DNA of 64,000 nt, from positions 185,607 to 249,606 of the IMG/VR virus record IMGVR_UViG_3300032323_001214. The stretch is one strand, 5' to 3'. The translations under genes and the position numbers were made by a program. Positions within the stretch are counted from its first letter, which is position 1. Every line of letters starts with the position of its first letter. Under the pieces are notes generated by a model. That model saw only the letters and a list, made by a program, of their open reading frames with translations, was not told the DNA's origin and searched no databases. Below, piece after piece: positions 14,335-58,256 of the stretch.

Positions 14335-14781
14335 ATGGCTAAGTGGGCACAAGGTAATTTCACTCCATCTAACCCACAGAAATATGTAGGTAAGCACACA
14401 CCTAGATATCGTTCAGGCTGGGAGTTGACCTTTATGCAATTTTGTGATAATAACAAACATATTATGTACTGGGCTAGTGAAGCTATAGCTATACCTTATA
14501 AAAACCCCTTTACAGGAAAACCTACTAGATATATACCTGATTTCTTTGTAGTATATCAAAACAAGTACGGTAAACAAATAGCAGAAGTAGTAGAGATTAA
14601 ACCTAAAAAACAAAGTATCATTGAAAGCAAAGTAGCAAACGCCAAAGATAGAATGGTAGTAGCATTAAATCATGCTAAATGGCAGGCTGCAATGGCCTAC
14701 TGTAAAAGTCAAGGATATACTTTTCGTGTGTTGACGGAGGAAGATATTTTTTACAATGGAAAACCAAAGAATAAAAGATAA
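14335..14781 (+). CDS. Head completion nuclease, T4 gp4-like (TnsA-like fold)
   Basis: YRSGWE..FM..CD, W.SE...IPY, Y.PDF, EIKP..Q, N.AKW.AA, F.V.TE. Confidence 0.9.
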   Translation: MAKWAQGNFTPSNPQKYVGKHTPRYRSGWELTFMQFCDNNKHIMYWASEAIAIPYKNPFTGKPTRYIPDFFVVYQNKYGKQIAEVVEIKPKKQSIIESKVANAKDRMVVALNHAKWQAAMAYCKSQGYTFRVLTEEDIFYNGKPKNKR

Positions 14782-14848
14782 ATAAAAGTGTAGTTCGCGG
14801 ACCTGAGAAATCCCAACTACTCTAATGCCGAGGAGGGCACCAGCAATG
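14777..14848 (+). ncRNA. Candidate structured leader RNA, copy A (late box, two stems)
   Basis: GTAGTT/AACTAC stem with CGC/C internal loop and GGA/TCC inner stem, TCTAA linker, TGCC/GGCA hairpin around GAGGAG; homologous to 38711-38780. Confidence 0.6.
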
Positions 14849-15544
14849 ATATTTATCAATAACAAATATACCACGTGGTATAATTCTATAATCAATAAAG
14901 CCAAAGATAGAACAATTAACGGCTACACAGAAAAACATCACATTATACCCAGTTCATTGGGCGGAAGTAATGGCACCGATAATTTGGTAAAATTAACACC
15001 TAGAGAACATTTTGTTTGTCATTTATTATTAACTAAGATGACAACATGTAATGCTAGGTACAAAATGAATTTTGCTCTATATATGTTGGCAAACATTAAA
15101 AACATAGGTGAAGGTAGATATATTCCTAATAGTAGAATGTACGATTTGGCTAGAAGATTATATAAAGAAACATTAGACAATTATTGGACAGATAAAAAAC
15201 GAAAAGAACATGCAGACAAAATAAGACCAACATCTGTGGGTAGAAAACTAAAAGAATCGTCAAAAGAAAAACTTAGGAATAAAGAATGGACAGAAAAAGC
15301 ACTTAAAAATCGCCTCAACAACTGTTTAAAATCAGCAGCAGCCAGAAAAGGTTCTAAATGGTCTGACGACCGCAAGGAACAAAAGTTTGAACAATATATA
15401 GAAAAAAACAAGCATCTATTTCCTCAAGTGTTCTCCTTATCTGACTCAGGTATTAACACACGACAAATATCTATCAAACTACAAATTTCATGGGATAGAG
15501 TAAAATACATTTTGGACAACAGAGACCGAATAAATAACATATGA
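14846..15544 (+). CDS. Free-standing HNH homing endonuclease
   Basis: EKHHIIP.SLGGSN...NLV.LTPREHFVCHLLL motif; basic C-terminal DNA-binding region. Confidence 0.85.
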   Translation: MIFINNKYTTWYNSIINKAKDRTINGYTEKHHIIPSSLGGSNGTDNLVKLTPREHFVCHLLLTKMTTCNARYKMNFALYMLANIKNIGEGRYIPNSRMYDLARRLYKETLDNYWTDKKRKEHADKIRPTSVGRKLKESSKEKLRNKEWTEKALKNRLNNCLKSAAARKGSKWSDDRKEQKFEQYIEKNKHLFPQVFSLSDSGINTRQISIKLQISWDRVKYILDNRDRINNI

Positions 15545-19311: not shown

Positions 19312-19340
19312 AAAATACCCGACTAGTCGGGTATTTTTTT
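19312..19340 (+). terminator. Intrinsic terminator
   Basis: AAAATACCCGA-CTAG-TCGGGTATTTTTTT. Confidence 0.85.
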
Positions 19341-19390
19341 GGCTATCGCCTTTGTAAAAAGAACGATAAATACTAGATAAGGTGATTTTT

Positions 19391-19954
19391 ATGTTTTATG
19401 TATATGCGTATTTGAGAGAAGATGGTAGTCCTTATTACATAGGAAAAGGAAAGAACAATCGTGCTTGGAAAAAAGGGAAGGGAGAAATCTCCCCACCTAA
19501 AGATATTTCTATGATAGTTATCATGGAAACTGGTTTGTCTGAATTGGGCGCACTAGCTATAGAAAGAAGAATGATTAAGTGGTATGGTAGAAAAGATTTA
19601 GGAACAGGAATTCTTCATAATAAGACAGAAGGCGGTGACGGAGTTTCAGGTGCTCGACAAACAAAAGAACATATACAAAAGCGTATAATTTCAAGTAAAG
19701 GAAAACCGATGGGCATGACGGGCAAGAAACATACAGCAGAATCCAATCACAAAAGAAGTGTTGCTATGTTAGGAAAAAATATCGGGCCACAATCAGCAGA
19801 ACACCGCCTTGCTAGTGGGTTAGCTAAAAGGGGAATGAAATATAAACCACAAGAAATTCTACAATGTTCTTATTGTAATAAATTAGGTGGCGCCGCAAAT
19901 ATGAAAAGATATCATATGGAAAATTGTAAATTAATAAAAGAGGAATATGTATGA
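19391..19954 (+). CDS. GIY-YIG homing endonuclease with NUMOD3-like repeats
   Basis: [20 protein letters not shown]..., N.T.GGDG; GKKHT.E motif; late box at 19365-19372. Confidence 0.85.
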
Positions 19955-22923
19955 GCCAACAAAATATTGACTTTGGTACATTTCCTGATGATCCTGATGC
20001 CGATGCTATAAGAACAGCGTTTCAAAAAGTACAGAATAATTTCAGTGAATTATACACAGTTACATCGGATTCATCAGTAACGTCAGTAAACAGATCCTCA
20101 GGTTCTGGAATAACAGTTAACGCTCCTACGGGAAATGTAGTAGTTAGTGCAAACGTGTATAGGGTAGAAGTTTCTACATCTACACTAAGTATAGGTATAG
20201 GTGCAAACAATTTGCCATCCCCTGCACTATATACGTCCGGTTCACAAACACTAGTTATTGACTTACCGGCTAATATTACAACAAATAATCTTACAACTAT
20301 AGGTAATGCAAATATCGGTGGATATGCAAATGTGTTAGGTAATGTCACTGGTGGTAATTTAAACACAAGTGGTGTAGTGTCTGCTACAGGTAACATAACT
20401 GGTGGTAATTTAAACACAAGTGGTGTCGTGTCTGCTATTGGTAATATTACTGGCGGAAACCTAACAACCGTCGGGGCATTAAGTGTGACCGGTAACGCTA
20501 ACGTAGGAAACATAGGTGCTACTACTGGTGTATTTACAGGAAATATAACTTCTCTTAATGCAAATTTGGGCAATTCTGTATCAGCAAACTATTTTGTAGG
20601 TGATGGTAGTTTATTAACAAACGTCATCCCTACTGCAGGCCCTGTAATTTCAAATGGTACAAGTTATGTTAATGTGGCAACATCCGGTGGCAATATTGTA
20701 TCTAATGTTGCAGGAGCTACAATTTTAACGTTATCTGCATCTGGTTCAAATTTAACAGGCTATTCCAATGTAACAGGTAATATATCTGCATCCAATGCAA
20801 GCTTGGGTAATTCAGTAACTGCAAATTATTTTTTAGGAAATCTTTATGGTGCAGCCAACACTGCGGCAACGGTAACGTCGGCTACACAATCTAATATAAC
20901 AAGCGTTGGTACATTAACATCATTAGGTGTTAATGGAACTATTACTGCTGTTGCCGTCACTGCTAATACAGGTATATTTACTGGTAATGGTAGTGGATTG
21001 AGTGCAATAGCAGGTGCTAATGTTTTGGGGTTTGTTTCAAACGCTAATGTTGCTAATACTGCATATGCTGTAGCAGGTGCTAACGTTAGTGGTCAAGTAG
21101 GCTTTGCCGCAACAGCGAATGCTGTAGCAGGAGCCAATGTAAGTGGTGAAGTAAGCTTTGCCGCAACAGCGAATGCTGTAGCAGGAGCCAATGTAAGTGG
21201 TACTGTTGCTAATGCATCCCATTCAGCTACTGCAAACACTGTAACAACTGCGGCACAACCCAACATCACTAGTACAGGCACATTAATAAGTCTAGATGTT
21301 ACCGGAAACGTAACTGCGGGTAATATATATGCTAACGCAGGTACTATTGGTGCTAATCTGTTAACAGGTACATTAACAACTAATATCCAACCAAACATTA
21401 CACAAGTAGGAACACTAGTAGCACTAAACGTTACCGGTAATGCTGTAGTAGGAAATGTATATGCAAATAGTGGTACTATACAAGCAAACAATTTTGTAGG
21501 TAATGGTGCTGGACTAACAAATATATCAGTGAGTGCGGGAAGTTATATTGAAAACGGCAGTAGCAATATTTCTATTTCTGCGAATAGTAATGCATCATTT
21601 AATATTGCAGGTAACGCAAATGTTATGGTAGTTACTGATACTGGTGCAAACATTAATGGTTATGCTAATGTGTCAGGGAATATTACCGCAGGTAATGTAA
21701 CTGCTACTGGATTAACAGGCGCACTAATAACATCAACTCAATCTAATGTAACATCACTGGGCACACTAACTGGTTTAACAGTAAATGGTATAAGTAATCT
21801 AGGTCCTAATAGCAACGTCACCATTACAGGTGGCGTAGCAAATGCATTCTTGAAAACCAATGGTAGTGGAAGTTTGTCATGGGATACTGCTACATTAGTA
21901 CCGGCTCAAGGGTCCAATACACAAGTTATATTCAATGATGGTGGTTCTACATATGCTGGAAATGCAAATCTAGCATTCAATAAGACAACTGGTGCATTAA
22001 CAGTAGGTGGAAACGTAAACGCAGGAAATGTATCAGGCGGAAATACGGTTACCGCAAACTTTTTACAAGGTGTAATAACCACTGCTTCACAACCCAATAT
22101 AACTGAAGTAGGTTCATTGGGTTATTTAATTGTGTCAGGTAACTTAAATGCAGGCAATATAGTTGGTAATGGTAGTAATCTAACTGAATTGAATGCAAAT
22201 AATATATCAAGTGGTACCTTAGCACAAGCAAGACTTGCAAATAGTTCTCTTACTATTAATGGTTCTAGTATATCATTGGGTGGTTCCGGTACTGTAACCG
22301 CTAACACTACTCAAACATTGACTCTAGGTTCATTCTTAACTGGGACAAGTTTCAACGGTGGCACCGCAGTAACAGCCGCTGTAGATGCTACATCGGCAAA
22401 TACAGCAAGTAAAGTTGTTGCACGTGATTCAAGTGGTAACTTTAGTGCAGGTACAATTACAGCAACATTAAGTGGTGCGGCAACAAGTGCTACTACGGCG
22501 GGTACTGTAACAACAGCAGCACAACCTAACATTACTAGTGTTGGCACTCTATCAAGTTTAGCAGTAACCGGTAACGTTACAATGGCTAATAGTGTTGCAT
22601 CAACATTTACCATAACAGGTGTTACTACAGGTATTACTGCGGCTGGCACTGTTCAAGCAAACGCAACTGCCTTGACTAGAGCAATGAACGTTGTATCAAC
22701 TGTACCATCAGGTACTGGTGTAATATTACCTACAGCAGTTGCAGGTATGGTGGTCTACATTACAAATACTAATGCAAACAGTGTATTCGTTTACCCAGGA
22801 TCAGGTGCACAAATCAATTTGTTAGGAACTAACAATGCGTTCTCTCTTACTTCAAACGCAACAATAACATTTATAGCGCCTACAACAACTCAATGGTACA
22901 CACCAAGTGCCACATATGTATAA
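19951..22923 (+). CDS. Tail fibre / baseplate-associated fibrous protein
   Basis: IDFGT.PDD..D.IR.AF.K...NF.ELY N-terminus; G/N/T/A-rich repeats; repeated [11 protein letters not shown] motif. Confidence 0.75.
20350..20451 (+). repeat. 51-nt in-frame tandem repeat ([17 protein letters not shown])
   Basis: Two near-identical copies. Confidence 0.85.
21101..21201 (+). repeat. 54-nt period in-frame tandem repeat ([15 protein letters not shown])
   Basis: Identical 47-nt blocks at 21101-21147 and 21155-21201; degenerate copies upstream. Confidence 0.9.
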
Positions 22924-26079: not shown

Positions 26080-28533
26080 ATGACAAGCGCAATAAACACA
26101 AACGGAATTAATGTAAACTATCCAGTACCCGGAGTTAATAATAACTCACAGGGTTTTAGAGATAATTTTACTGCCATCAGAACTAACTTAAACACTACTG
26201 CTACTGAGATAACAGACTTGCAAAATAAAGTTGTCGTCAAGCAAGCACTAGATGGTACTGTGATTAATAATGATATGGCTAATGCAGTCATTAGCAACGC
26301 AGTAACACGCAGTTTTAGGGCAAGTACTTATAATTTGGGTAACGCACTAAGTGGTACCGTATTAGTAGATGTATCATTGGGTGATGTACAATACGGAACT
26401 ATTGCTGGTAATACGATATTATCATTCGGTGGCTGGGCACCTAGTGGCACACAAAGTTCACTTGAACTAGTATTAGGATTTTCCAATGCACAAGCAGTAG
26501 TTAGTTTCCCCACTACCGTAATAAACAACGCAGATTATGGTTCTACTACTATCGAGAATTATAGTTCTGGTGGAAGCTTTTTAACAGTAACTGTACCATA
26601 CGGAGTCACACAACTAGGTTTTGATTTGTCCACTCTTGATTGCGGTAATTCAATTTATATTGCACCAACAAATCGTCCTAGACAATCAACACAGATATTC
26701 AATCGCACACCTCCGCCAACAGGCCAGCAAGGTGATGTTCAAGGTGCGTTCGCTATTGATCCATTACAAACAGCACAACCAACAACTTGTACTGCGACTG
26801 AAGGTACGTTTGAAATAATTACATGTAATAGTACCGCAGGTTTCTACTTAGATATGCCTATTGTATTTACTGGAAACGTGTTCGGTGGTATTACTGCTGG
26901 TACAACATATTATGTTAGAGTTATACCTTCAAGTACTACGTTTACTATATCTGCGTCTCCGGGTACTGTTTCAGGACCTAGTGCCGCAGTAAATTTAAGC
27001 ACCGCATCAGGTACAATGATTGCATCGCCGGTGCAATATCTATATGCTTCTACAGGTAATTACAATGGTAACATTGTTAGTAAGACAGCAACTAGTACTA
27101 CAGCTTCTTCAAATACACAAGCTGTAACATCAGTTGCGTCAACTGGTAATTTAATAACAGTTACTAGTACAGCAAATTATGCATTGAATGATCCTATTGT
27201 ATTTTCTGGCACAACGGGCGCACAGAATTCATTCATAACTTTCAACTTAGCAAACACTATTCAAATTAGTAGTGTCGCTGACTTTACAGTAGGTATGCCT
27301 GTCACATTTTTAGGCACTATTTGGGAAGGAAACTTAAATCAGGGAAATACTTTCTATGTGAATACTGTTCAACCTACAGTAACTGCAGGATTGATACAAA
27401 TACAAGGTCAATACACAATTGCAACGGCTGGAACAACTAACTTCACATTATTGGGAGCCGCAAACAATAACGTAGGTACTTCGTTCACTGCTACCGCAAA
27501 CGGATTATACACGTCAGGTAATTTTGTTATAGGACAACCATATACTATTGCTACTTCGGGTACTACTAACTTTGTAGCGTTAGGGTCAGCAAGTAATACT
27601 GCAGGCACCACATTTACGGCTACAGGTACAGGTTTAGTTAGCTCTGGTAGTTTTGTGGTAGGTGCAAGCTATACTATTGTTACTCCCGGCACAACAGATT
27701 TTACGTTATTAGGAGCCTCAAATAGTTTAGCAAATACAACATTTACGGCTACTGGAAACGGATTAATAACTGCAGGTAGTTTTGTGACTACAAAATCATA
27801 TACTATTGTTAGTGCAGGGTCAACTAACTTCACATTAATTGGAGCTGCTAATAACAATCCAGGCACTACTTTTGTTGCAACAGGGGCAGGTACTGGTACT
27901 GGAACTGCTAATCAAGGAAATGGTACAGCGGCACAAGGAACTGGAACTGCTGTACAAGGAACTGGCACAGCAGTGGCATCTGGTCAATTCACTGTAGCAA
28001 GTACTTACGGTGGTGCAAATATTGATTTAGCAGGCAATGTTAGTGGTACGCCAATGGTAGTTAGATATGGCGGCGTAATGTCAACTTATGCTAATGGTAA
28101 TATTACTAGTAATATTATATCAGGTACTACTTACTATGTTCAAAGCATTGCGTCAGGTACTACACTCACTATCTCTGCTACACCAGATGGTGCACCAATT
28201 CAATTGTTTAATGCTACTGGTCCAGCGTCAGGTCCTCAGTCTATGAATGCCACTGTGACAACAAATTTTACCATTACTGTCAACAATACTAATTCGTTAG
28301 TAGTGAATGATGCTATCATCTTTACTGGAAACGTATTTGGTAATATAACTGCAAATGTTCCATACTATATAAGTAGCATTGACACTGGAAATTCACAAAT
28401 AACGATATCAAGTACACGTTACAATGGTATTGCTGGACAAATTAAACCTTTAACTACAGCTAGTGGTTCTATGACTGCAAACAGCATTCAGGGAACTAAT
28501 ATTTGGAAAAGATTACCACTCAACAGTTGGTAA
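26080..28533 (+). CDS. Tail fibre / appendage protein
   Basis: YPVPG.NN.SQGFRDNF N-terminus, beta-rich repeats, W.R..L..W C-terminus; late box at 26052-26059. Confidence 0.7.
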   Translation: MTSAINTNGINVNYPVPGVNNNSQGFRDNFTAIRTNLNTTATEITDLQNKVVVKQALDGTVINNDMANAVISNAVTRSFRASTYNLGNALSGTVLVDVSLGDVQYGTIAGNTILSFGGWAPSGTQSSLELVLGFSNAQAVVSFPTTVINNADYGSTTIENYSSGGSFLTVTVPYGVTQLGFDLSTLDCGNSIYIAPTNRPRQSTQIFNRTPPPTGQQGDVQGAFAIDPLQTAQPTTCTATEGTFEIITCNSTAGFYLDMPIVFTGNVFGGITAGTTYYVRVIPSSTTFTISASPGTVSGPSAAVNLSTASGTMIASPVQYLYASTGNYNGNIVSKTATSTTASSNTQAVTSVASTGNLITVTSTANYALNDPIVFSGTTGAQNSFITFNLANTIQISSVADFTVGMPVTFLGTIWEGNLNQGNTFYVNTVQPTVTAGLIQIQGQYTIATAGTTNFTLLGAANNNVGTSFTATANGLYTSGNFVIGQPYTIATSGTTNFVALGSASNTAGTTFTATGTGLVSSGSFVVGASYTIVTPGTTDFTLLGASNSLANTTFTATGNGLITAGSFVTTKSYTIVSAGSTNFTLIGAANNNPGTTFVATGAGTGTGTANQGNGTAAQGTGTAVQGTGTAVASGQFTVASTYGGANIDLAGNVSGTPMVVRYGGVMSTYANGNITSNIISGTTYYVQSIASGTTLTISATPDGAPIQLFNATGPASGPQSMNATVTTNFTITVNNTNSLVVNDAIIFTGNVFGNITANVPYYISSIDTGNSQITISSTRYNGIAGQIKPLTTASGSMTANSIQGTNIWKRLPLNSW
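27385..27900 (+). repeat. Four ~43-aa tandem repeats (YTIxTxGTTxFxLLGAxxNxxGTTFTATG)
   Basis: Visible in the translation of 26080-28533. Confidence 0.8.
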
Positions 28534-28546
28534 ATAAATACATTGG

Positions 28547-28777
28547 ATGGAACATCCTTTTATTAACGATTTATCTGATAAGTCACTTGAAGATTTGCAA
28601 AATGCTATCAGTGACTTAATGGGTAAACTCAACTTTGCACATAGAACCGGCAACGGAGCACTCATTCATCAACTCTATATGGTTATTGATAGCTATAAGA
28701 AAGAGTATAACAAAAAGATGGATGAGTTAATTGCCAAACAAAATATGAGCAACAAAATTAACATTCAAAAAGACTAA
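28547..28777 (+). CDS. Hypothetical protein
   Basis: 76-aa helical ORF after AATAAATA box. Confidence 0.7.
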   Translation: MEHPFINDLSDKSLEDLQNAISDLMGKLNFAHRTGNGALIHQLYMVIDSYKKEYNKKMDELIAKQNMSNKINIQKD

Positions 28778-32975: not shown

Positions 32976-33113
32976 AACACTCAGAGATATTTAAGGTGAA
33001 ATATACCCTATATAGTAGTAGAGTTATTATGTAATGTTTGTGCATAAATATTAGGCTCTGCTTATTATTTTTACAAACTACACAATCGTTTGTAAAATGA
33101 TAAATACTTTATC

Positions 33114-33719
33114 ATGGATATAAAAACAGCAGACAAATTTTTTCAAGACGTAGACTACGTTAGCATCATTGATACCGTTAAGGGTATTATGACTAGCGAT
33201 GGTTCTATGGCTACTTTACTTGATTACGAGCGTGTCCTAGACGAAGCAGATGTATATGCTTATAAGAACTGGGAATTAGGCGAACTCGTACAAGGACCAG
33301 ACGTAAAGAGATATACCGTATCATGTATCTTTATGTGGCCTTACAAACTAATGCCCGACCCTAGAGCTTGTAAAAGATTAGCTTCTATAGGATGCAAAAT
33401 TAAGTTTAAAAAAACTCACATCAAAGTACCAGTGGAAGTATTAGATTATGAAGATTTTGTTCCGGGCACACGTTATCCTAAGATGGCAAAAAGACACATA
33501 TGGCTTGTATACATTGAAATGCCTAAGGAATTAATGGATGAAATTCGTGAAGGTTCAATTGATTTAGCCGACCAAACTATTGACTTAGAAGAATTAAGTG
33601 ACTCATATGAAGAAGACTTAGATCAAGAAGATATCAAAGATGATGAATCTGCGGGAACAGATAATTCATCTGGTACAGGGTTAGGAGCCCCGGCATTAGG
33701 CACAACACCGGTAGCATAA
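33114..33719 (+). CDS. Hypothetical late protein
   Basis: 201-aa ORF 7 nt after GATAAATA (33099-33106). Confidence 0.7.
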   Translation: MDIKTADKFFQDVDYVSIIDTVKGIMTSDGSMATLLDYERVLDEADVYAYKNWELGELVQGPDVKRYTVSCIFMWPYKLMPDPRACKRLASIGCKIKFKKTHIKVPVEVLDYEDFVPGTRYPKMAKRHIWLVYIEMPKELMDEIREGSIDLADQTIDLEELSDSYEEDLDQEDIKDDESAGTDNSSGTGLGAPALGTTPVA

Positions 33720-35738: not shown

Positions 35739-38006
35739 GTGAACAATTCACCCGAAATCGAAAGCATCATTGAAGAAGCCATTATTCAGGCAAAAGAGCG
35801 CAGACACCAGTATGTAACTATAGAGCATCTGTTACTGTCATTAATTACACATACTCCTTTCAAAAAATGTTTGGATGGTTTTGGTGCAGATACTGAAAAT
35901 TTAATTAAAGAAGTTGGTGCTTACCTAGATAGTCTACATGCAATTGTAGACAAAACATCTGAGGAAGTTCAACCAAGAAAAACTAATTCACTTGAGCGCA
36001 CAATGAATCGTAGCGTTACTCAGGTGTTGTTTACTGGGCGTAGACAAGTTACTACTATAGACCTGTATCTAAGTATTTCAAGCGAAGGTAATAGCCACGC
36101 ACATTACTATTTGCTAAAATATGGAATTAACAAATCTGAATTTGTTCAGCATTGGCAAAGACATTATAAGGGTGCAGAATTCACTGCTAAGTTATCTGAT
36201 AGCCAAGCTGACGAAATCCTCGAAGAATATACAACAAACTTAACACAACTTGCACGACAGGGCAAACTAGAACCGTTGATCGGTCGTAGTGTTGAAATTG
36301 ATGACATTGTTAATGTATTGGCTAAACGATTTAAGAGTAACGTATTGATGGTTGGTGATCCGGGCGTTGGTAAAACTGCTATTGCAGAAGGTATCGCACA
36401 AAAGATTGTCAATGCAGATGTACCTGAATTCTTAAATGACCATGAAGTCTATAGTCTTGAAGTAGGTGCTCTACTTGCAGGATCAAAATATCGCGGCGAC
36501 TTTGAAGAAAAAGTAAAACAAGTCATTGATGCATTGAATACCAAGAAGAAAGCTATCCTATTCATTGATGAAGCTCACACTATGCAGGGTGCAGGCTCTA
36601 GTAATACTGGTGGACCTGACTTTGCAAATATGATTAAGCCTGCAATTACTAAAGGTACATTGAAAGTTATCGCAAGTACAACTTGGGAAGAATTCTATGA
36701 GTCTTTTGAAAAGGATCGTGCATTGATGCGTAGATTCTATAAAATCTCTATTGATGAACCATCAAATGAAACTACTCAAAGAATCCTTAAAGGCTTGAGC
36801 ACACGTTTAAATGACTTCCATGACGTTAACATCACTGACGAAGCTATTGCATCTGCTGTAGAAAACGCTGCCCGTTACATTCACGATAGAAAGAATCCTG
36901 ATAAGAGTATTGATTTACTTGATGCAGCTTGTGCAAAGCAACGTGTTGCTGGTAATAAAGGAATAGACATTACTAAAGATTTGATCCATGAACAAGTAGA
37001 AAGATACACTGGTGTACCTGCTGACAAACTCAATGGTGATAATTTTTCTCGCATTAATGACCTTGAGTTGAACATCAAGGGGAAATTATATGGTCAAGAT
37101 GAAACAATTGAACAAGTTCTTGAAAGAGTATATGTAAGTTTTGCTGGGATTGGCAATGATAATAAGCCAACTGCTAGCTTTATCTTCTTGGGCCCAACAG
37201 GTACAGGTAAAACAGAATTGGCTAAGTTGTTGAGTAAGAACCTTGACATGCCATTGCTCAAGTACGACATGTCAGAATACGGTGAAAAGCATTCGGTGTC
37301 TAGCTTGATCGGTCCACCCCCTGGTTATGTTGGCTTCGGAGACAGTCAAGTTGGCGGTGGTAGATTGATTAGCGATTTGAGCAAGAATCCTCACAGTATC
37401 TTGTTGTTTGACGAAGTTGAAAAAGCACACCCTGATATCTTTAACATCTTCTTGCAAATGCTTGATGAAGGTCGCATTACAGGATCTAACGGAAAAGAAG
37501 TTAACTGTAAAAATACTATCATTATTATGACTAGTAATTTAGGTTCCAGTGATAGCGAAAGAAACAATATTGGTTTTGGTAATCAAGAAAAAACAGGTGA
37601 AGATGATAAAGCAATTAAAGAATTCTTCAAACCTGAATTCAGAAACCGTGTTGATTTAATTTGTAAATTCAAGAAACTTGATTTGTTGGCTATTAAAAAG
37701 ATTGTAGTCAAGTTCACTGAGGAACTTAAGAAAACACTGATGGACAAACATAATATTAGTTTGAACCTTACTGAGCCGGTAATAGAATACCTAGCTGAGA
37801 ATGGTTATGATAATAAAATGGGAGCACGTCCACTTGCTCGTAAAATTGATGAAATGATTCGAGTTCCTATCTCAAAGAAGATTCTTTTCGAACGCATAAA
37901 AAATGCAACTATCAATGTTACATTAGTAGACGATAAAATCGAGTTTAATTCGGTGCAAAAGCAAACAGCGAGAGTAGGCGAAGATGGGATTATTGAAATC
38001 AGTTGA
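35739..38006 (+). CDS. clpA: ClpA-like Clp ATPase (two AAA+ domains)
   Basis: GDPGVGKT, FIDEAH, GPTGTGKTE, DMSEY, PPGYVG, FDEVEKAH, IGF ClpP-docking loop, MGARP. Confidence 0.9.
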   Translation: MNNSPEIESIIEEAIIQAKERRHQYVTIEHLLLSLITHTPFKKCLDGFGADTENLIKEVGAYLDSLHAIVDKTSEEVQPRKTNSLERTMNRSVTQVLFTGRRQVTTIDLYLSISSEGNSHAHYYLLKYGINKSEFVQHWQRHYKGAEFTAKLSDSQADEILEEYTTNLTQLARQGKLEPLIGRSVEIDDIVNVLAKRFKSNVLMVGDPGVGKTAIAEGIAQKIVNADVPEFLNDHEVYSLEVGALLAGSKYRGDFEEKVKQVIDALNTKKKAILFIDEAHTMQGAGSSNTGGPDFANMIKPAITKGTLKVIASTTWEEFYESFEKDRALMRRFYKISIDEPSNETTQRILKGLSTRLNDFHDVNITDEAIASAVENAARYIHDRKNPDKSIDLLDAACAKQRVAGNKGIDITKDLIHEQVERYTGVPADKLNGDNFSRINDLELNIKGKLYGQDETIEQVLERVYVSFAGIGNDNKPTASFIFLGPTGTGKTELAKLLSKNLDMPLLKYDMSEYGEKHSVSSLIGPPPGYVGFGDSQVGGGRLISDLSKNPHSILLFDEVEKAHPDIFNIFLQMLDEGRITGSNGKEVNCKNTIIIMTSNLGSSDSERNNIGFGNQEKTGEDDKAIKEFFKPEFRNRVDLICKFKKLDLLAIKKIVVKFTEELKKTLMDKHNISLNLTEPVIEYLAENGYDNKMGARPLARKIDEMIRVPISKKILFERIKNATINVTLVDDKIEFNSVQKQTARVGEDGIIEIS

Positions 38007-38697: not shown

Positions 38698-38710
38698 AAT
38701 GATAAATGCT

Positions 38711-38780
38711 GATAAATAAGTGTGAGTCGCGGCGCTACCAACGCCCACTCACTCTAATGCTACAAGGAGCAATCAGCATG
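38711..38780 (+). ncRNA. Candidate structured leader RNA, copy B
   Basis: GTGAGT/ACTCAC stem, CGC/C loop, GGCG/CGCC inner stem, TCTAA, TGCT/AGCA hairpin over the SD; covaries with 14777-14848. Confidence 0.6.
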
Positions 38781-39311
38781 AATATTTATAACAAATCTAA
38801 TCCTCCCTCAGGATTCTACGTATATGCCTACATAAGAGAAGATGGTACACCATACTATATCGGTAAAGGTATAGGTGATAGAGCATGGTATAAGTCGCCC
38901 ACTGAAATAGGCAAGCCTGCGGACCACAGCCGAATTATAATTATTGAGCAAAATCTTACTGAGTTAGGGTCATTAGCCATAGAACGCCAATTAATACGAT
39001 GGTATGGACGTAAAGATTTGGATACAGGAATACTACGAAATCTAACTGACGGTGGTGATGGAACTAGTGGGAACAAAAGAAGTGTTGAAACAATAGAAAA
39101 AATGAGAAGATCAATGCTTGGAAAAAATACCGGACCCCAATCATTGGAACATAAAACTAATGCCGCAAATGCCAGACGAGGTGTAAAACAAAGCCAAAAA
39201 CACATCCAAGCGAGGGTCAATGCTTGTAAAGGTAAACCCAGATCAGATGAAGTAAAGCTAAAAATTAGTATGAGTAAGACCGGTGTAAAAAGAAGCCAAA
39301 CTATGAAATAA
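38778..39311 (+). CDS. GIY-YIG homing endonuclease (paralogue of 19391-19954)
   Basis: FYVYAYIREDGTPYYIGKG ... WYGRKDL.TGIL.N.TDGGDG; NUMOD3-like repeats. Confidence 0.85.
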   Translation: MNIYNKSNPPSGFYVYAYIREDGTPYYIGKGIGDRAWYKSPTEIGKPADHSRIIIIEQNLTELGSLAIERQLIRWYGRKDLDTGILRNLTDGGDGTSGNKRSVETIEKMRRSMLGKNTGPQSLEHKTNAANARRGVKQSQKHIQARVNACKGKPRSDEVKLKISMSKTGVKRSQTMK

Positions 39312-39341
39312 TTAGATAAATACATTATCTAAGGAAATAAA

Positions 39342-42679: not shown

Positions 42680-42696
42680 GTATTGATAAATACTTA

Positions 42697-44427
42697 ATGA
42701 ACCTAAAAGAGCTAAATTCCTTCAAAATATCCGACGCCGTCACTTTCCATGACAAACTCAACCACAAGTTGTGGAATGGTACTAAGTTACGCCCAGAAGT
42801 CAAACAACAACTAGAAGCAATTGCAGATGATTTTCTGCAAGAGATGGGAATCCATGAGTTAGATGTGAGAGATATTACTATTTCAGGAAGTAATGCTGCA
42901 TATAGTTATACCGATCATAGTGATTTGGATTTGCATATATTAGTGAATGTAAATGATTTGCCTAGTAGTGATGTATATAAAGAATTGTTTCAAGCAAAAA
43001 AGACAATATATAATGATACACACAACATAACCATACGCAAAGTTCCGGTTGAATTATATGTACAAGACGCAAGTGAACCAGTTGTAAGTTTGGGGGAGTA
43101 CAGCATAAAAAATGATAGCTGGATTAAGATTCCTACAAAGCGTAGAAGCAACTTTGATCAAAATGCCACCAAAGCAAAATATAATAAGTTATTAGATATT
43201 GTTGAACGAGCAATAGAATCAAACAATTTAAACAAAATTCAAAAAGTATTAAAGAAGATTAAACAATATCGTCAAGCTGGTTTAGATAAAGGTGGCGAAT
43301 TTGGTCCTGAGAATCTAGCATATAAAGCACTACGTAGTCAGGGCTATATTACTAAACTGTACGATTTGCGTGATAAACTACACAGCAATCGTTTAAGCAT
43401 TGAAGGTATGTATTCTAATATGGATGAAGATTATGATCCCAATGGTCCTCCTCCTGGCCCTGAGTTCAAGCCTACAATGCCAGCTGGTACTGTCAAAGTA
43501 GATGTAAGTGATGTATATGACTGGTACAAGTTAGGTCAACATATTAGTAATATGAAAGGTCTAGGCAAACACGATTTTGGTAGTGGACCCCCTAGTACTA
43601 TATTGTCATTTGGTGACGAAGATACTGAACACAAATATATTGACGCATTACAGAAAACGGGCTTAACAACTACTGATATTGATCCAGTCGATCCTAAACA
43701 ACCTAAAGGTATGAAGCGCCAGAAAGTTGACCCTACATACAATGTTAACGAAACATTTAATAAACCTTATTCAATAACATGGGAAAAAAGTGAGTACGGC
43801 GATTACGATGCTCTGGCCACACTAGAAGATGGCACACACCTAAGCATAATGTTTGAGCACACTACTCCCTACGAAGTTGCTGTTTCTTTTTGGAGAAACA
43901 ACAGTCAAGAAGTCACAGGCGAAGGTGATGCACAACGAGTATTTGCTACAGTATTGTCTGCTATTCAACAGTTTTTAAAACAAGAGCAGCCGGCAAATAT
44001 AACTTTCTCAGCAGTGAAAGCAGATGATCCATCGGGCAGCAGATCCAAGCTTTACGACAAACTAGTTCAGCGTTATGCTAGCGCATGGGGATATCAGTCT
44101 CGCAGTTTTGACCATGATGACAAAGTAGAATTTGAATTATCTAAAATAAACAAGAATGTAAAAGAAGATGAAACAATGCAATATGCGGCTGAAAAAACAC
44201 CGCCAACAAATACATACGGTGGTTTAAGAGATAACCAATATCGAGGCAGTATCTCAGAAGCCTCAGGATACATTCCTAGCGAAAAAGAGAAAAATGACCC
44301 GCGTTTTAAGACGGCATTAACAGTAGATGTTAAGCCAGATAGTATAAAAAAGAACGCAAAAGCTTTTAGCTGGCTCACAGATAGAGCGGGCATTCCACCA
44401 ACATTAAAAGCTAGCGGCAAATTCTGA
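42697..44427 (+). CDS. Pol-beta-superfamily nucleotidyltransferase fused to several small modules
   Basis: ISGSNA.Y.Y...SDLDLH (GS..DxD) and VELYVQD; downstream modules bounded by MDE, VNE, VKE, ISE. Confidence 0.75.
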   Translation: MNLKELNSFKISDAVTFHDKLNHKLWNGTKLRPEVKQQLEAIADDFLQEMGIHELDVRDITISGSNAAYSYTDHSDLDLHILVNVNDLPSSDVYKELFQAKKTIYNDTHNITIRKVPVELYVQDASEPVVSLGEYSIKNDSWIKIPTKRRSNFDQNATKAKYNKLLDIVERAIESNNLNKIQKVLKKIKQYRQAGLDKGGEFGPENLAYKALRSQGYITKLYDLRDKLHSNRLSIEGMYSNMDEDYDPNGPPPGPEFKPTMPAGTVKVDVSDVYDWYKLGQHISNMKGLGKHDFGSGPPSTILSFGDEDTEHKYIDALQKTGLTTTDIDPVDPKQPKGMKRQKVDPTYNVNETFNKPYSITWEKSEYGDYDALATLEDGTHLSIMFEHTTPYEVAVSFWRNNSQEVTGEGDAQRVFATVLSAIQQFLKQEQPANITFSAVKADDPSGSRSKLYDKLVQRYASAWGYQSRSFDHDDKVEFELSKINKNVKEDETMQYAAEKTPPTNTYGGLRDNQYRGSISEASGYIPSEKEKNDPRFKTALTVDVKPDSIKKNAKAFSWLTDRAGIPPTLKASGKF

Positions 44428-57948: not shown

Positions 57949-58191
57949 ATGGCTCGCAAGAAGATTCAACTTGGAGAAGTGATCTCATTGCCTACATCAA
58001 TAGAAAAGGGTAGTCACTTAACTGTGACTACCTTTCCTGATGGTCGCACTGAATTAAAATGGGATGATGAAGCACTGCTTAGTGAAGTAAGAAATGCTAT
58101 ACTAAAAGCAGAAAGTGTTATGCCCGTGACGAATGAAGTCAAGCCTGCAGTTAAGGCTAAATCAAAAAAATCAGTTACTAAATCAAAGTGA
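57949..58191 (+). CDS. Hypothetical protein
   Basis: 80-aa ORF in operon. Confidence 0.6.
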   Translation: MARKKIQLGEVISLPTSIEKGSHLTVTTFPDGRTELKWDDEALLSEVRNAILKAESVMPVTNEVKPAVKAKSKKSVTKSK

Positions 58192-58256
58192 TAAATACTT
58201 GTGCTACACAACGGTAGCACAATGTCAAAACAAAACCATCACAAAGGAAGGTTATC
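58190..58256 (+). promoter_or_regulatory. Late box plus hairpin leader of folE
   Basis: GATAAATA then GTGCTAC-ACAACG-GTAGCAC stem-loop. Confidence 0.5.

Follow-up and report, generated by a model that had tools for sequence, protein, structure and literature searches.

In a 64,000-nucleotide stretch of the IMG/VR virus record IMGVR_UViG_3300032323_001214 (positions 185,607 to 249,606, hereafter the window), two look-alike leaders preceding an HNH and a GIY-YIG-type homing endonuclease gene belong to a very widespread control module of about 100 bases, which sits in front of many unrelated homing endonuclease genes (HEGs) in uncultivated T4-like phages, and whose conserved structure fits a small antisense RNA made from the opposite strand better than a folded mRNA leader. 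The existence of that RNA is inferred from sequence alone, and the reading is therefore put forward with only moderate confidence. Each leader consists of an (N)ATAAATA late-promoter-like motif, a hairpin (P1), a UCUAA linker, a second hairpin (P2) holding the Shine-Dalgarno (SD) sequence, CAGC, the start codon, and an invariant TATTTAT box (Table 1).

Table 1. Features of the two leaders and their surroundings; positions are those of the window.
Position	Strand	Copy or site	Feature
14760..15540	+	A	Whole inserted cassette (780 bp)
14777-14856		A	Extent of copy A
14777..14784	+	A	GATAAATA, late-promoter-like motif for the HNH gene; its complement forms the end of the minus-strand U-tract; the stop codon of the upstream gene (14779-14781) lies inside it
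14787..14823	.	A	Hairpin P1: outer pairs 14787-88/14822-23; core GTAGTT/AACTAC 14790-14795/14815-14820; CGC (14796-14798) opposite C (14814); GGA/TCC above; on the minus strand a 13-bp stem with two bulged Gs followed by ACUUUUAUUUAU (predicted intrinsic terminator)
14821..14844	.	A	Linker TCTAA (14821-14825), P2 TGCC/GGCA (14826-14829/14836-14839) around SD GAGGAG (14830-14835), then CCAGC (CAGC 14841-14844); on the minus strand CUGGUGCC / GGCAUUAG forms an 8-bp 5' hairpin whose loop CUCCUC is the anti-SD
14778..14844	-	A	Predicted cis-antisense RNA of about 67 nt; start inferred about 6 nt after the minus-strand ATAAATA, end in the U-tract overlapping the sense promoter
14846..15544	+	A	HNH homing endonuclease gene (MIFINNKYT...); start taken as ATG 14846, not the upstream in-frame ATG at 14825 given by automated ORF listing
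14850..14856	-	A	TATTTAT box (codons 2-4 of the HNH gene); ATAAATA on the minus strand, predicted promoter of the antisense RNA
15530-15536		A	ATAAATA recreated by the 3' end of the cassette, 4 nt before the ATG of the downstream gene (15541)
38701-38707		B	GATAAAT, remnant of the native promoter, just upstream of copy B
38711-38789		B	Extent of copy B
38711..38718	+	B	GATAAATA, promoter-like motif
38719..38755	.	B	Hairpin P1: GTGAGT/ACTCAC 38722-38727/38747-38752; CGC opposite C; GGCG/CGCC; on the minus strand a terminator-like stem followed by ACUUAUUUAUC
38753..38777	.	B	TCTAA (38753-38757), P2 TGCT/AGCA with SD AAGGAG, then ATCAGC (CAGC 38774-38777); on the minus strand the 5' hairpin with the anti-SD loop
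38712..38777	-	B	Predicted cis-antisense RNA of about 66 nt
38778..39311	+	B	GIY-YIG-type/NUMOD3 homing endonuclease gene (MNIYNKSN...), ATG 38778
38783..38789	-	B	TATTTAT box; ATAAATA on the minus strand
39315-39323		B	GATAAATAC, which would serve the next gene (ATG 39342)

The observation of the earlier note, that the same leader with three covarying stems stands before two unrelated endonuclease families, is confirmed, and both copies read exactly as it described them. Five pairs change on both sides between the two copies and stay paired, and the downstream ORFs match phrog_655 (HNH; 4.9e-40) and phrog_314/15526 (GIY-YIG-type/NUMOD3). The similarity is far beyond chance, since a covariance-model search of the window with filters off finds only these two sites (92 and 88.5 bits, the next best at 18 bits), whereas the model finds hundreds of copies elsewhere. 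The third endonuclease gene of the window, at 19391, has the promoter motif but no leader. Two points had been missed, namely that the similarity continues past the ATG as the TATTTAT box, in different reading frames in the two copies, and that GATAAATA is a general promoter-like motif of this phage rather than something specific to the leader. In the window ATAAATA occurs 20 times on the plus strand, 16 of them intergenic or at a gene end just upstream of gene starts, against 6 times on the minus strand, and NATAAATA is the late promoter of T4-like cyanophages (PMC2984593). The spacing of an upstream TGTCAA, considered as a -35 element, to ATAAATA varies from 4 to 13 nt.

The family is large. 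Two independent pattern scans of IMG/VR each returned at least 120 loci, 118 of 120 hits in the first being true members, and together they gave at least 167 unique full leaders; of 89 copies anchored on the 3' half, all 89 also carry P1. The absence of further homologues or of significant covariation had been named beforehand as outcomes that would refute the interpretation, and a match to a described Rfam family as one that would remove its novelty, and none of them was found. In Rfam 15 there is no gathering-level hit in the window, only chance-level hits (E above 1) fall on the leader, and in scans of three related loci nothing falls on the leader. Megablast of 2.1 kb and blastn of two leaders against 50,697 deposited phage records gave no match, and a literature search by sequence string returned only irrelevant hits. 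A pattern scan of bacterial and archaeal genomes gave 24 hits, near or below chance, of which only 2 are real, both on short MAG contigs, so the element is not cellular.

The interpretation offered in the earlier note, of a portable cis-regulatory RNA or the end structure of a mobile element with an invariant loop serving as a protein or ligand binding site, is supported only in part. Its claim of portability is strongly supported. The ORFs downstream of the 167 leaders fall into at least 8 N-terminal clusters of HNH and GIY-YIG endonucleases, and leader subtypes show no association with endonuclease family, the same subtype preceding many HEG families. At site A, 74 of 80 relatives have about 24 bp (..GTAACTAAATACTTTT-ATG) in place of the 780-bp cassette, and at this same site some relatives hold an HNH gene and another a GIY-YIG gene behind the same leader. 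The borders of the cassette fall on the TAAATA promoter motif at both sites, with site A being bordered by it on both sides, and TAAATA lies within 60 nt of the HEG stop codon in 24 of 88 cases, against 9% in the background.

These borders and swaps also form the case for a rival reading, considered unlikely, in which the element is an insulator plus recombination joint without any regulatory RNA. In that view, the minus-strand hairpin and U-tract would only stop stray antisense transcription from entering the upstream gene, including transcripts from a TATTTAT box kept for another reason, while the conserved ~100 bp would serve mainly as a homology patch through which HEG ORFs are swapped, for which the PeSL (promoter-early stem-loop) cassettes of T4-like phages provide the precedent (PMC2839356, PMC4122927). 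A pure homology patch, however, would not show compensatory changes or a strand-specific wobble pattern, and would need neither the fixed 5-nt spacing between the box and the first antisense hairpin nor the anti-SD loop. PeSLs are likewise small composites of promoter and stem-loop that repeat through a genome, mark indel borders and act as points of exchange between unrelated ORFs, but they combine an early (sigma-70 type) promoter with a same-strand terminator. Here the motif is of the late type, the sense-strand tail after P1 is UCUAAUGC, which is not a U-tract, the terminator-like hairpin with its U-tract faces the other way, and the cassette is tied to endonuclease genes.

The stems are real and P1 covaries strongly, with a covariation score of 0.307 against 0.106 in shuffles, exceeded in 0 of 500 shuffles. 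The structure is, however, better conserved on the strand opposite to the mRNA, which appears to be the strand of function. Mismatches on the sense strand are A.C, which are G.U wobbles on the minus strand, and in core P1 they number 15 A.C against 0 G.U in one alignment (A2) and 17 against 1 in another (A4). The same 18 pairs are 99.1% paired on the minus strand, with 145 G.U cells, and 90.1% paired on the sense strand, with 3 G.U cells, although related sequences inflate these cell counts and the A.C events in core P1 represent roughly 6-8 independent changes, not 30. Consistent with that, RNAalifold gives -19.1 kcal/mol for the antisense strand and -11.5 for the sense strand, and the antisense minimum free energy is lower in 77 of 88 sequences (p = 6e-14). 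The extended 5' antisense hairpin shows no double compensatory change, but only one-sided A-U to G.U variation. Since G.T is tolerated in DNA hairpins, the asymmetry would also fit a hairpin formed in minus-strand single-stranded DNA, for example a replication or recombination signal, but this very unlikely reading leaves the promoter motif at fixed spacing, the U-tract and the anti-SD loop as coincidences.

Most of the bases that appear unpaired and invariant in the mRNA find partners on the antisense strand. UCUAA and CAGC pair there with each other through an invariant G.U, seen in 87 of 88 sequences, and the middle G of CGC pairs with the lone C (G-C or G.U), which leaves two bulged Gs. 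A ligand or protein pocket formed by the CGC/C loop and the UCUAA linker is therefore not needed, and this reading is considered very unlikely. In its favor, the two C residues flanking the loop purine (the bulged Gs of the minus strand) are invariant even in the sample that did not fix them, and no pairing explains them. Against it, the loop purine varies between G and A without compensation on the sense strand, the apical loop is free in both sequence and length, and there is no Rfam match. The last hairpin, which the earlier note described as holding the SD, holds only half of it in a sense stem of 3-4 bp and is not a stable RBS-sequestering hairpin of the I-TevI type. An alternative pairing (P2') of UGCU with the AGCA in CAGCAUG was rejected, because divergent copies compensate for P2, not P2'.

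On the minus strand P1 is followed by ACUUUUAUUUAU, so that it reads as a predicted intrinsic terminator. The hairpin averages -11.8 kcal/mol there, against -8.7 on the sense strand, and is followed by a mean of 6.4 U in the next 10 nt, although a simple terminator scanner, whose rule needs an ungapped stem while this stem has two bulges, calls nothing at either copy. The spacer is selected to be A-rich on the sense strand; the base after the sense ATAAATA is A in 118 of 167 leaders and C in 3, whereas among other ATAAATA sites C is the commonest base, at 34%. (N)ATAAATA lies 3-5 nt before P1 in all but three of the 88 aligned leaders, and the three copies that lack it still keep AUUUUUGUU after the hairpin, and still keep the box.

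The box is present in 165 of 167 leaders at ATG offsets 5, 4 and 3, and thus in all three reading frames, being fixed relative to CAGC and lying about 5 nt from the first antisense hairpin. Nucleotide-level selection acts on it, in that codon 2 encodes 10 different amino acids, yet 143 of 143 end in T, and the Ile codon is ATT in 139 of 143 cases, against 39% in the background. As the box is ATAAATA on the minus strand, this meets the expectation for an antisense promoter at the level of the motif, its firing being inferred.

The box has a competing explanation in a sense-strand cis-regulatory leader of the T4 I-TevI/mobE type, which is considered an unlikely reading. In this model, the promoter sequence AUAAAUA on read-through transcripts pairs with UAUUUAU just after the AUG (helix P0) and closes a three-way junction that hides the start region, whereas transcripts started at the late promoter lack the 5' arm and are translated, with P1 acting as a 5' stabilizer. 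The pairing appears in the minimum-free-energy fold of both window copies (z = -2.4 and -4.8), and read-through RNAs need 2.35 kcal/mol more than promoter-started RNAs to open positions -12..+12 around the AUG, which holds in 88% of 167 leaders. The sense strand still folds P1 and a short P2, and HEG-less relatives use exactly this logic on an ordinary gene, where GATAAATACUC..GAGUAUUUA covers the SD, so that a sense-strand role is not excluded by the favored antisense reading; the mechanism itself is established for T4 HEGs (PMC2988022). Yet only about 1.1 kcal/mol of the cost is specific, as shuffled upstream sequence gives 1.27 kcal/mol and replacing the box gives 1.20, and the mean P0 pair probability is 0.31. 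Complementarity does not extend beyond the 7-nt motif, the flanking pair being formed in 43% of leaders, about what base frequencies alone would give by our estimate, and cognate against non-cognate duplexes give -7.5 against -6.8 kcal/mol. Three leaders without the sense ATAAATA still keep the box, and the model does not explain the A.C/G.U asymmetry, the U-tract, or the invariant UCUAA and CAGC. P0 was accordingly rejected as the main reason for the box.

The reading favored here is that of a portable control cassette for free-standing HEGs in T4-like environmental myoviruses, built from two convergent late-type promoters. In this model, the sense (N)ATAAATA motif starts the HEG mRNA right at P1, while the box just after the start codon starts a cis-antisense RNA of about 67 nt, which begins with a hairpin whose loop is the anti-SD sequence (CUCCUU) and ends at the complement of P1, which with the following ACUUUUAUUUAU would be an intrinsic terminator overlapping the sense promoter. 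Being fully complementary to the HEG 5' UTR, SD and AUG, the antisense RNA would keep endonuclease translation low, to which head-on transcription may add, and its terminator would keep antisense transcription out of the upstream phage gene. Because the module is self-contained and bordered by the promoter motif, it would recombine freely in front of unrelated endonuclease ORFs and into promoter-bearing intergenic sites. It has to be stressed that while the family, its anatomy, the covariation, the strand asymmetry, the nucleotide-level selection on the box and the insertion borders are shown by the analysis, that both motifs fire, that the antisense RNA exists and that it represses are inferences. 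It also weighs against the model that both promoters are of the same class, which leaves the timing logic of the repression unexplained. In its furthest form, which is tentative and judged somewhat less likely than not, this single module governs free-standing homing endonucleases of many unrelated families across hundreds of uncultivated T4-like phages, moving between endonuclease ORFs and between promoter-bearing intergenic sites, and, as leaders within one genome are near-identical, the antisense RNAs could also act in trans on all endonuclease copies of that genome.

The late-promoter and RBS-sequestering hairpin control of T4-family endonucleases (I-TevI, I-TevII, I-TevIII, segB, Aeh1 mobE; reviewed in PMC2988022) likewise has a late-type TATAAATA-like promoter directly upstream of the endonuclease gene, RNA structure around the translation start, a gene embedded in a co-oriented operon, and the apparent purpose of keeping expression low and late. 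In T4, however, the promoter lies inside a very stable hairpin whose other arm covers the SD, so that only longer transcripts are blocked, and the hairpins are individual to each gene, whereas here the complement of the promoter lies after the AUG, not on the SD, the helix is weak, the conserved stems fit the opposite strand, and one sequence family is shared by at least 8 endonuclease clusters. The antisense RNA CfrI of cyanophage S-PM2 (Millard et al. 2010, as described in PMC2984593) also lies opposite a homing endonuclease gene in a T4-like phage that uses the NATAAATA late promoter, but it is about 225 nt, spans the endonuclease gene and psbA, and has been shown experimentally, while the RNA proposed here is predicted only, covers only the 5' leader, and belongs to a repeated portable module. 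The small cis-antisense RNAs of temperate phages, such as P22 sar against ant and lambda OOP, are RNAs of about 70 nt made from a promoter that faces the target promoter, are complementary to the ribosome binding site of the target, and end at an intrinsic terminator; the phages and promoter classes are unrelated, and those RNAs are single-copy regulators of one gene, not a mobile cassette. Finally, hairpins with TATAAATA and two conserved, complementary motifs precede free-standing GIY-YIG and Vsr-like endonucleases in the "fractured genes" of ocean metagenomes (Dassa et al. 2009, PMC2677866), where they were interpreted as sense-strand RBS-sequestering structures. These may be the same family or a sister family, and the present finding may also reinterpret them, although a link of the present leaders to split-intein fractured genes found no support, as 63 upstream ORF ends examined here show no intein domains.

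In practical terms, the covariance model is a sharp marker for finding free-standing endonuclease genes and their insertion borders in viromes, and the element gives a compact natural cassette for tightly limited expression and a clean test case for assigning the strand of function from G.U/A.C asymmetry. Homing endonucleases are selfish genes, which a phage tolerates only if they are kept quiet, by means that outside T4 are largely unknown. The element would be a common, portable solution used by at least eight endonuclease lineages in a large group of environmental jumbo and T4-like phages, and it would be the first case in which the regulator that travels with the endonuclease is an antisense RNA gene rather than an mRNA hairpin.

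The two leader copies read in the sequence exactly as the earlier note had described them, and its observation is therefore confirmed. From GTGT to TCTAATGC the two copies align without gaps, and five base pairs differ on both sides while remaining paired. The open reading frames behind them encode an HNH endonuclease (phrog_655, 4.9e-40) in the case of copy A and a GIY-YIG-type endonuclease with a NUMOD3 motif (phrog_15526/314) in the case of copy B. Two points were missed in the note, namely that the similarity continues into the coding region as a TATTTAT box, which lies in different reading frames in the two genes, and that the GATAAATA motif is also present in front of ordinary genes. The interpretation offered in the note, that of a portable cis-regulatory RNA or the end structure of a mobile element, shared across endonuclease families, is partly supported, in that the leader is indeed shared among unrelated endonuclease genes, whereas its conserved structure fits the strand opposite to the mRNA better than the mRNA itself.

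Coordinates of the features discussed in the text (window positions unless a locus is named)
Feature	Position	Strand
Copy A, GATAAATA	14777-14784	
Copy A, endonuclease ATG	14846	
Copy A, TATTTAT box	14850-14856	
Copy A, predicted antisense RNA	about 14844 to 14778	-
Copy B, GATAAATA	38711-38718	
Copy B, endonuclease ATG	38778	
Copy B, TATTTAT box	38783-38789	
Copy B, predicted antisense RNA	about 38777 to 38712	-
GATAAATA in front of ordinary genes	12082, 19366	
Site A, inserted segment (780 bp)	14760-15540	
Site A, rewritten end of the upstream TnsA-like gene	14760-14781	
Third endonuclease gene (ATG 19391) with preceding terminator and motif	19316-19954	
ATAAATA 4-7 nt before the ATG of the next gene	15530-15544, 28534-28549, 33100-33116, 42686-42699	
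Promoter-like motif followed by a 9-bp hairpin	58191-58235	
Long in-frame tandem repeats	20337-20438, 21058-21219, 27411-27881	
ClpB/ClpA-like ATPase gene	35739-38006	+
Promoter:anti-promoter hairpin, endonuclease-free relatives of site B	L202:3725-3765, L207:1425-1462	
Three clustered leader-endonuclease cassettes	L086:4734-11615	
Family members on contigs binned as bacterial	L209:2642-2748, L223:1490-1595	
Match to freshwater-2 RNA	L038:3490-3567	-

The window is part of a 249.6-kb viral contig, IMGVR_UViG_3300032323_001214; the retrieved loci L121 and L201 are 100% identical, and the two sites are the same 23,649 bp apart. It encodes tail sheath and tube proteins, a clamp loader, a family-B DNA polymerase, PhoH and a GroES-like protein, and is therefore a distant T4-like myovirus, with no close relative among 50,697 deposited phage records. 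The phage also encodes a full-length ClpB/ClpA-like double-AAA ATPase (AAA_2 2.1e-53, Clp_N, ClpB_D2-small; phrog_4871, 8e-236), as well as two ORFs of 990 and 817 aa which contain long in-frame tandem repeats (51 nt x2, 54 nt x3, 129 nt x4), have no PHROG match and are probably fibre-like proteins.

The ATAAATA motif occurs 20 times on the + strand of the window, and 16 of these occurrences are intergenic or at gene ends, mostly 4-60 nt before gene starts, whereas it occurs six times on the - strand, with one of those preceding a - strand gene. As NATAAATA is the late promoter of T4-like cyanophages (PMC2984593), the motif is treated here, by inference, as the late promoter of this phage. At four places it stands only 4-7 nt before the ATG of the next gene, with no SD, which suggests leaderless or near-leaderless late mRNAs, and the same arrangement is seen in endonuclease-free relatives of the site carrying copy A (site A). 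At another place a late-promoter-like GATAAATAC is followed 2 nt later by a 9-bp hairpin (UUGUGCUAC/GUAGCACAA) that ends at the AUG of the next gene, so that 5'-terminal hairpins may be common on the late mRNAs of this phage. A third endonuclease gene in the window (GIY-YIG-like, with 77% nucleotide identity to the gene of copy B over 56 nt) follows a canonical terminator and a GATAAATAC motif, but has neither the P1/P2 leader (P1 being the first hairpin and P2 the short hairpin around the SD) nor the TATTTAT box.

The two copies belong to a very large family. A scan of IMG/VR with the pattern TCGCGG-N9-13-CCCA-N5-TCTAATGC returned at least 120 hits, and 118 of 120 have the whole architecture. 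A second pattern, anchored only on the 3' half (AAGGAGCAATCAGCATGNNTATTTAT), likewise returned at least 120 hits, and 89 of 89 unique copies carry P1 upstream; in all, 167 unique full leaders were collected. A covariance model (R1) finds only the two copies in the window (92 and 88.5 bits, with the next best site at 18), while in the retrieved loci it finds extra, diverged copies, with some contigs carrying three or more. The leader-endonuclease cassettes cluster, three of them lying in about 6.5 kb of locus L086 and at least four in the 259-kb contig IMGVR_UViG_3300032562_000003 (loci L019, L026 and L030). Of 24 pattern hits in 596 Gb of bacterial and archaeal genomes only two are real, and these lie on short contigs (3.9 and 2.1 kb) binned as Bacteroides/Bacteroidetes MAGs, which is at most a weak hint about the host and may be a binning artefact. 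Searches against Rfam found no family for the leader, and blastn against the deposited phages gave no hit. In one related phage contig (L038), a match to the Rfam freshwater-2 RNA (RF02980, 66 bits, E = 3.5e-08) lies about 2.6 kb from the leader copy. In the 50 nt upstream of the leader promoters in the retrieved loci (e.g. L020, L050, L056 and L067), TGTCAA(G) is enriched about 9-fold (30 of 167) and TATTTA(TC) about 6-fold (30 of 167), with variable spacing to the sense promoter.

Of 96 complete ORFs behind leaders, 88 have 141-321 codons and eight are stubs. Of the 88, 52 match phrog_314, 32 match phrog_655, and others match further endonuclease PHROGs, while Pfam searches detect NUMOD3, HNH_3, HNH, GIY-YIG and SegE domains. 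Their N-terminal 100 residues fall into eight clusters, comprising an HNH cluster of 26, three GIY-YIG-like types of 26, 18 and 12, and four small ones. Each common P1 subtype precedes several of these clusters, and leader and ORF are therefore shuffled against each other.

The cassette is mobile and has defined borders. At site A, 74 of 80 relatives of the upstream gene lack the leader and the endonuclease, and the inserted segment of the window replaces about 24 bp, ..AAGTAACTAAATACTTTT-ATG. The native spacer already holds (C/A)TAAATA 5 nt before the downstream ATG; the cassette brings its own GATAAATA at the left and recreates GAATAAATAACAT-ATG at the right, inside the end of the endonuclease ORF. 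The insertion also rewrote the last codons of the upstream TnsA-like gene, in that relatives with the cassette match residues 1-148 and those without it match 1-143/145, and the stop codon of this gene now lies inside the endonuclease promoter motif. In the relative L133, the same site and left flank carry the leader followed by a GIY-YIG gene instead of the HNH gene. At site B, which carries copy B, endonuclease-free relatives read TAAAATGATAAATACTC..ATG, whereas the window keeps TAAAATGATAAAT, followed by the cassette and then by GATAAATAC before the next gene. Across the family, TAAATA lies within 60 nt of the endonuclease stop in 24 of 88 cases, against 9% in the background. The upstream neighbours are diverse (TnsA-like, PhoH, AhpC, helicases and T4-type terminase), and none shows intein halves.

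On the sense strand, P1 covaries strongly, with six pairs changing on both sides and 135 cells showing double changes, against 37.7 in shuffles, a value exceeded in 0 of 500 shuffles. Its apical loop is free in both sequence and length. P2 is nearly invariant in the first sample, but diverged copies compensate: L133 has ACAUU/AAUGU, L028 has UGAUU/AAUCA, L067 has an A-U, and copy A and L112 have C-G.

The TATTTAT box is selected as nucleotides. It is present in 165 of 167 leaders, at offsets 5, 4 or 3 from the start codon (143, 10 and 11 leaders), and is thus fixed relative to CAGC and not to the reading frame. In the offset-5 class, codon 2 encodes ten different amino acids, yet 143 of 143 end in T; codon 3 is ATT in 139 of 143, where the background Ile usage is ATT 39%, ATA 35% and ATC 26%; and codon 4 is TAT in 136 of 143. 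As the box is the complement of the promoter motif, it could close a helix (P0) on read-through RNA and hide the start, in the manner of the control described for T4. Consistent with that, the fold appears in both window copies, and read-through RNAs cost 2.35 kcal/mol more to open around the AUG. However, shuffled upstream sequence gives 1.27 kcal/mol and a replaced box gives 1.20, so that only about 1.1 kcal/mol is specific, and the mean P0 pair probability is 0.31. In addition, the complementarity does not extend past the 7-nt motif, and three leaders that lack the sense ATAAATA (L017, L033 and L094) still keep the box. The classical T4 arrangement does exist in this phage group on an ordinary gene, as GATAAATACUC..GAGUAUUUA covering the SD; endonuclease-free relatives of site B (L202 and L207) carry GATAAATACTC-taataaaatg-GAGTATTTAcc-ATG, a 9-bp promoter:anti-promoter hairpin over the SD. 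This explanation remains a rival, but it does not explain the box here.

Several lines of evidence place the conserved structure on the other strand. Mismatches in the core of P1 are A.C and not G.U, with 15 against 0 in one alignment (A2) and 17 against 1 in another (A4), and the purine of the CGC loop is A opposite C in 16 copies; on the minus strand these are all G.U wobbles. RNAalifold gives -19.1 kcal/mol for the antisense orientation and -11.5 for the sense orientation, and single-sequence MFEs favour antisense in 77 of 88 sequences (p = 6e-14). On an antisense alignment (A5), 18 predicted pairs are 99.1% paired, against 88.6% in shuffles (0 of 500), with a covariation score of 0.307, whereas the same pairs read on the sense strand are 90.1% paired, and G.U cells number 145 on the antisense strand and 3 on the sense strand. 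The antisense fold also explains the bases which the earlier note had singled out as invariant, among them the internal loop for which it had suggested a protein or ligand binding site. CUG(A/G), the complement of CAGC, pairs with UUAG, the complement of the CUAA in UCUAA, through a G.U present in 87 of 88 sequences; the common T/C polymorphism before CAGC is A-U or G.U there; and the middle base of CGC pairs with the lone C, leaving two bulged Gs. Conserved bulges are a known feature of antisense RNA stems, in which they speed target binding and protect against RNase III.

Read on the minus strand as a predicted antisense gene, the element has the following order: ATAAATA (the box), about 5 nt, a hairpin whose loop is CUCCUU, the anti-SD, one base, the complement of P1, and ACUUUUAUUUAU. 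The last hairpin averages -11.8 kcal/mol, against -8.7 on the sense strand, and is followed by a mean of 6.4 U in 10 nt, although a simple terminator scan, which needs an ungapped stem, does not call it. The base after the sense ATAAATA is A in 118 of 167 leaders and C in 3, while at other ATAAATA sites C is the commonest base, and the leaders that lack the sense promoter still have AUUUUUGUU there. The RNA predicted from sequence alone is 62-78 nt, with a mean of 67.

In the mechanism proposed, two head-on late promoters would lie about 75 bp apart, with the sense RNA starting at P1 and the antisense RNA starting at its anti-SD hairpin. The antisense RNA would pair with the leader, probably starting loop to loop between SD and anti-SD, and would block the SD and the AUG, possibly with RNase III cleavage and promoter interference. 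It has to be kept in mind that, while the anatomy of the element and its signatures of selection are established by the analysis, the firing of the promoters, the existence of the antisense RNA and the repression itself are inferred. The predicted antisense terminator would shield the upstream gene from antisense transcription.

The closest known systems are the late-promoter/hairpin control of endonucleases in T4 (PMC2988022); the hairpins with TATAAATA and two conserved motifs upstream of GIY-YIG and Vsr-like endonucleases in ocean metagenomes (PMC2677866), which may be the same family; the PeSL cassettes (PMC2839356, PMC4122927); and the CfrI antisense RNA opposite an endonuclease gene in S-PM2 (PMC2984593). 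While it is not a member of either as defined, the element would, in this view, work like a cis-antisense regulator and spread like a PeSL.
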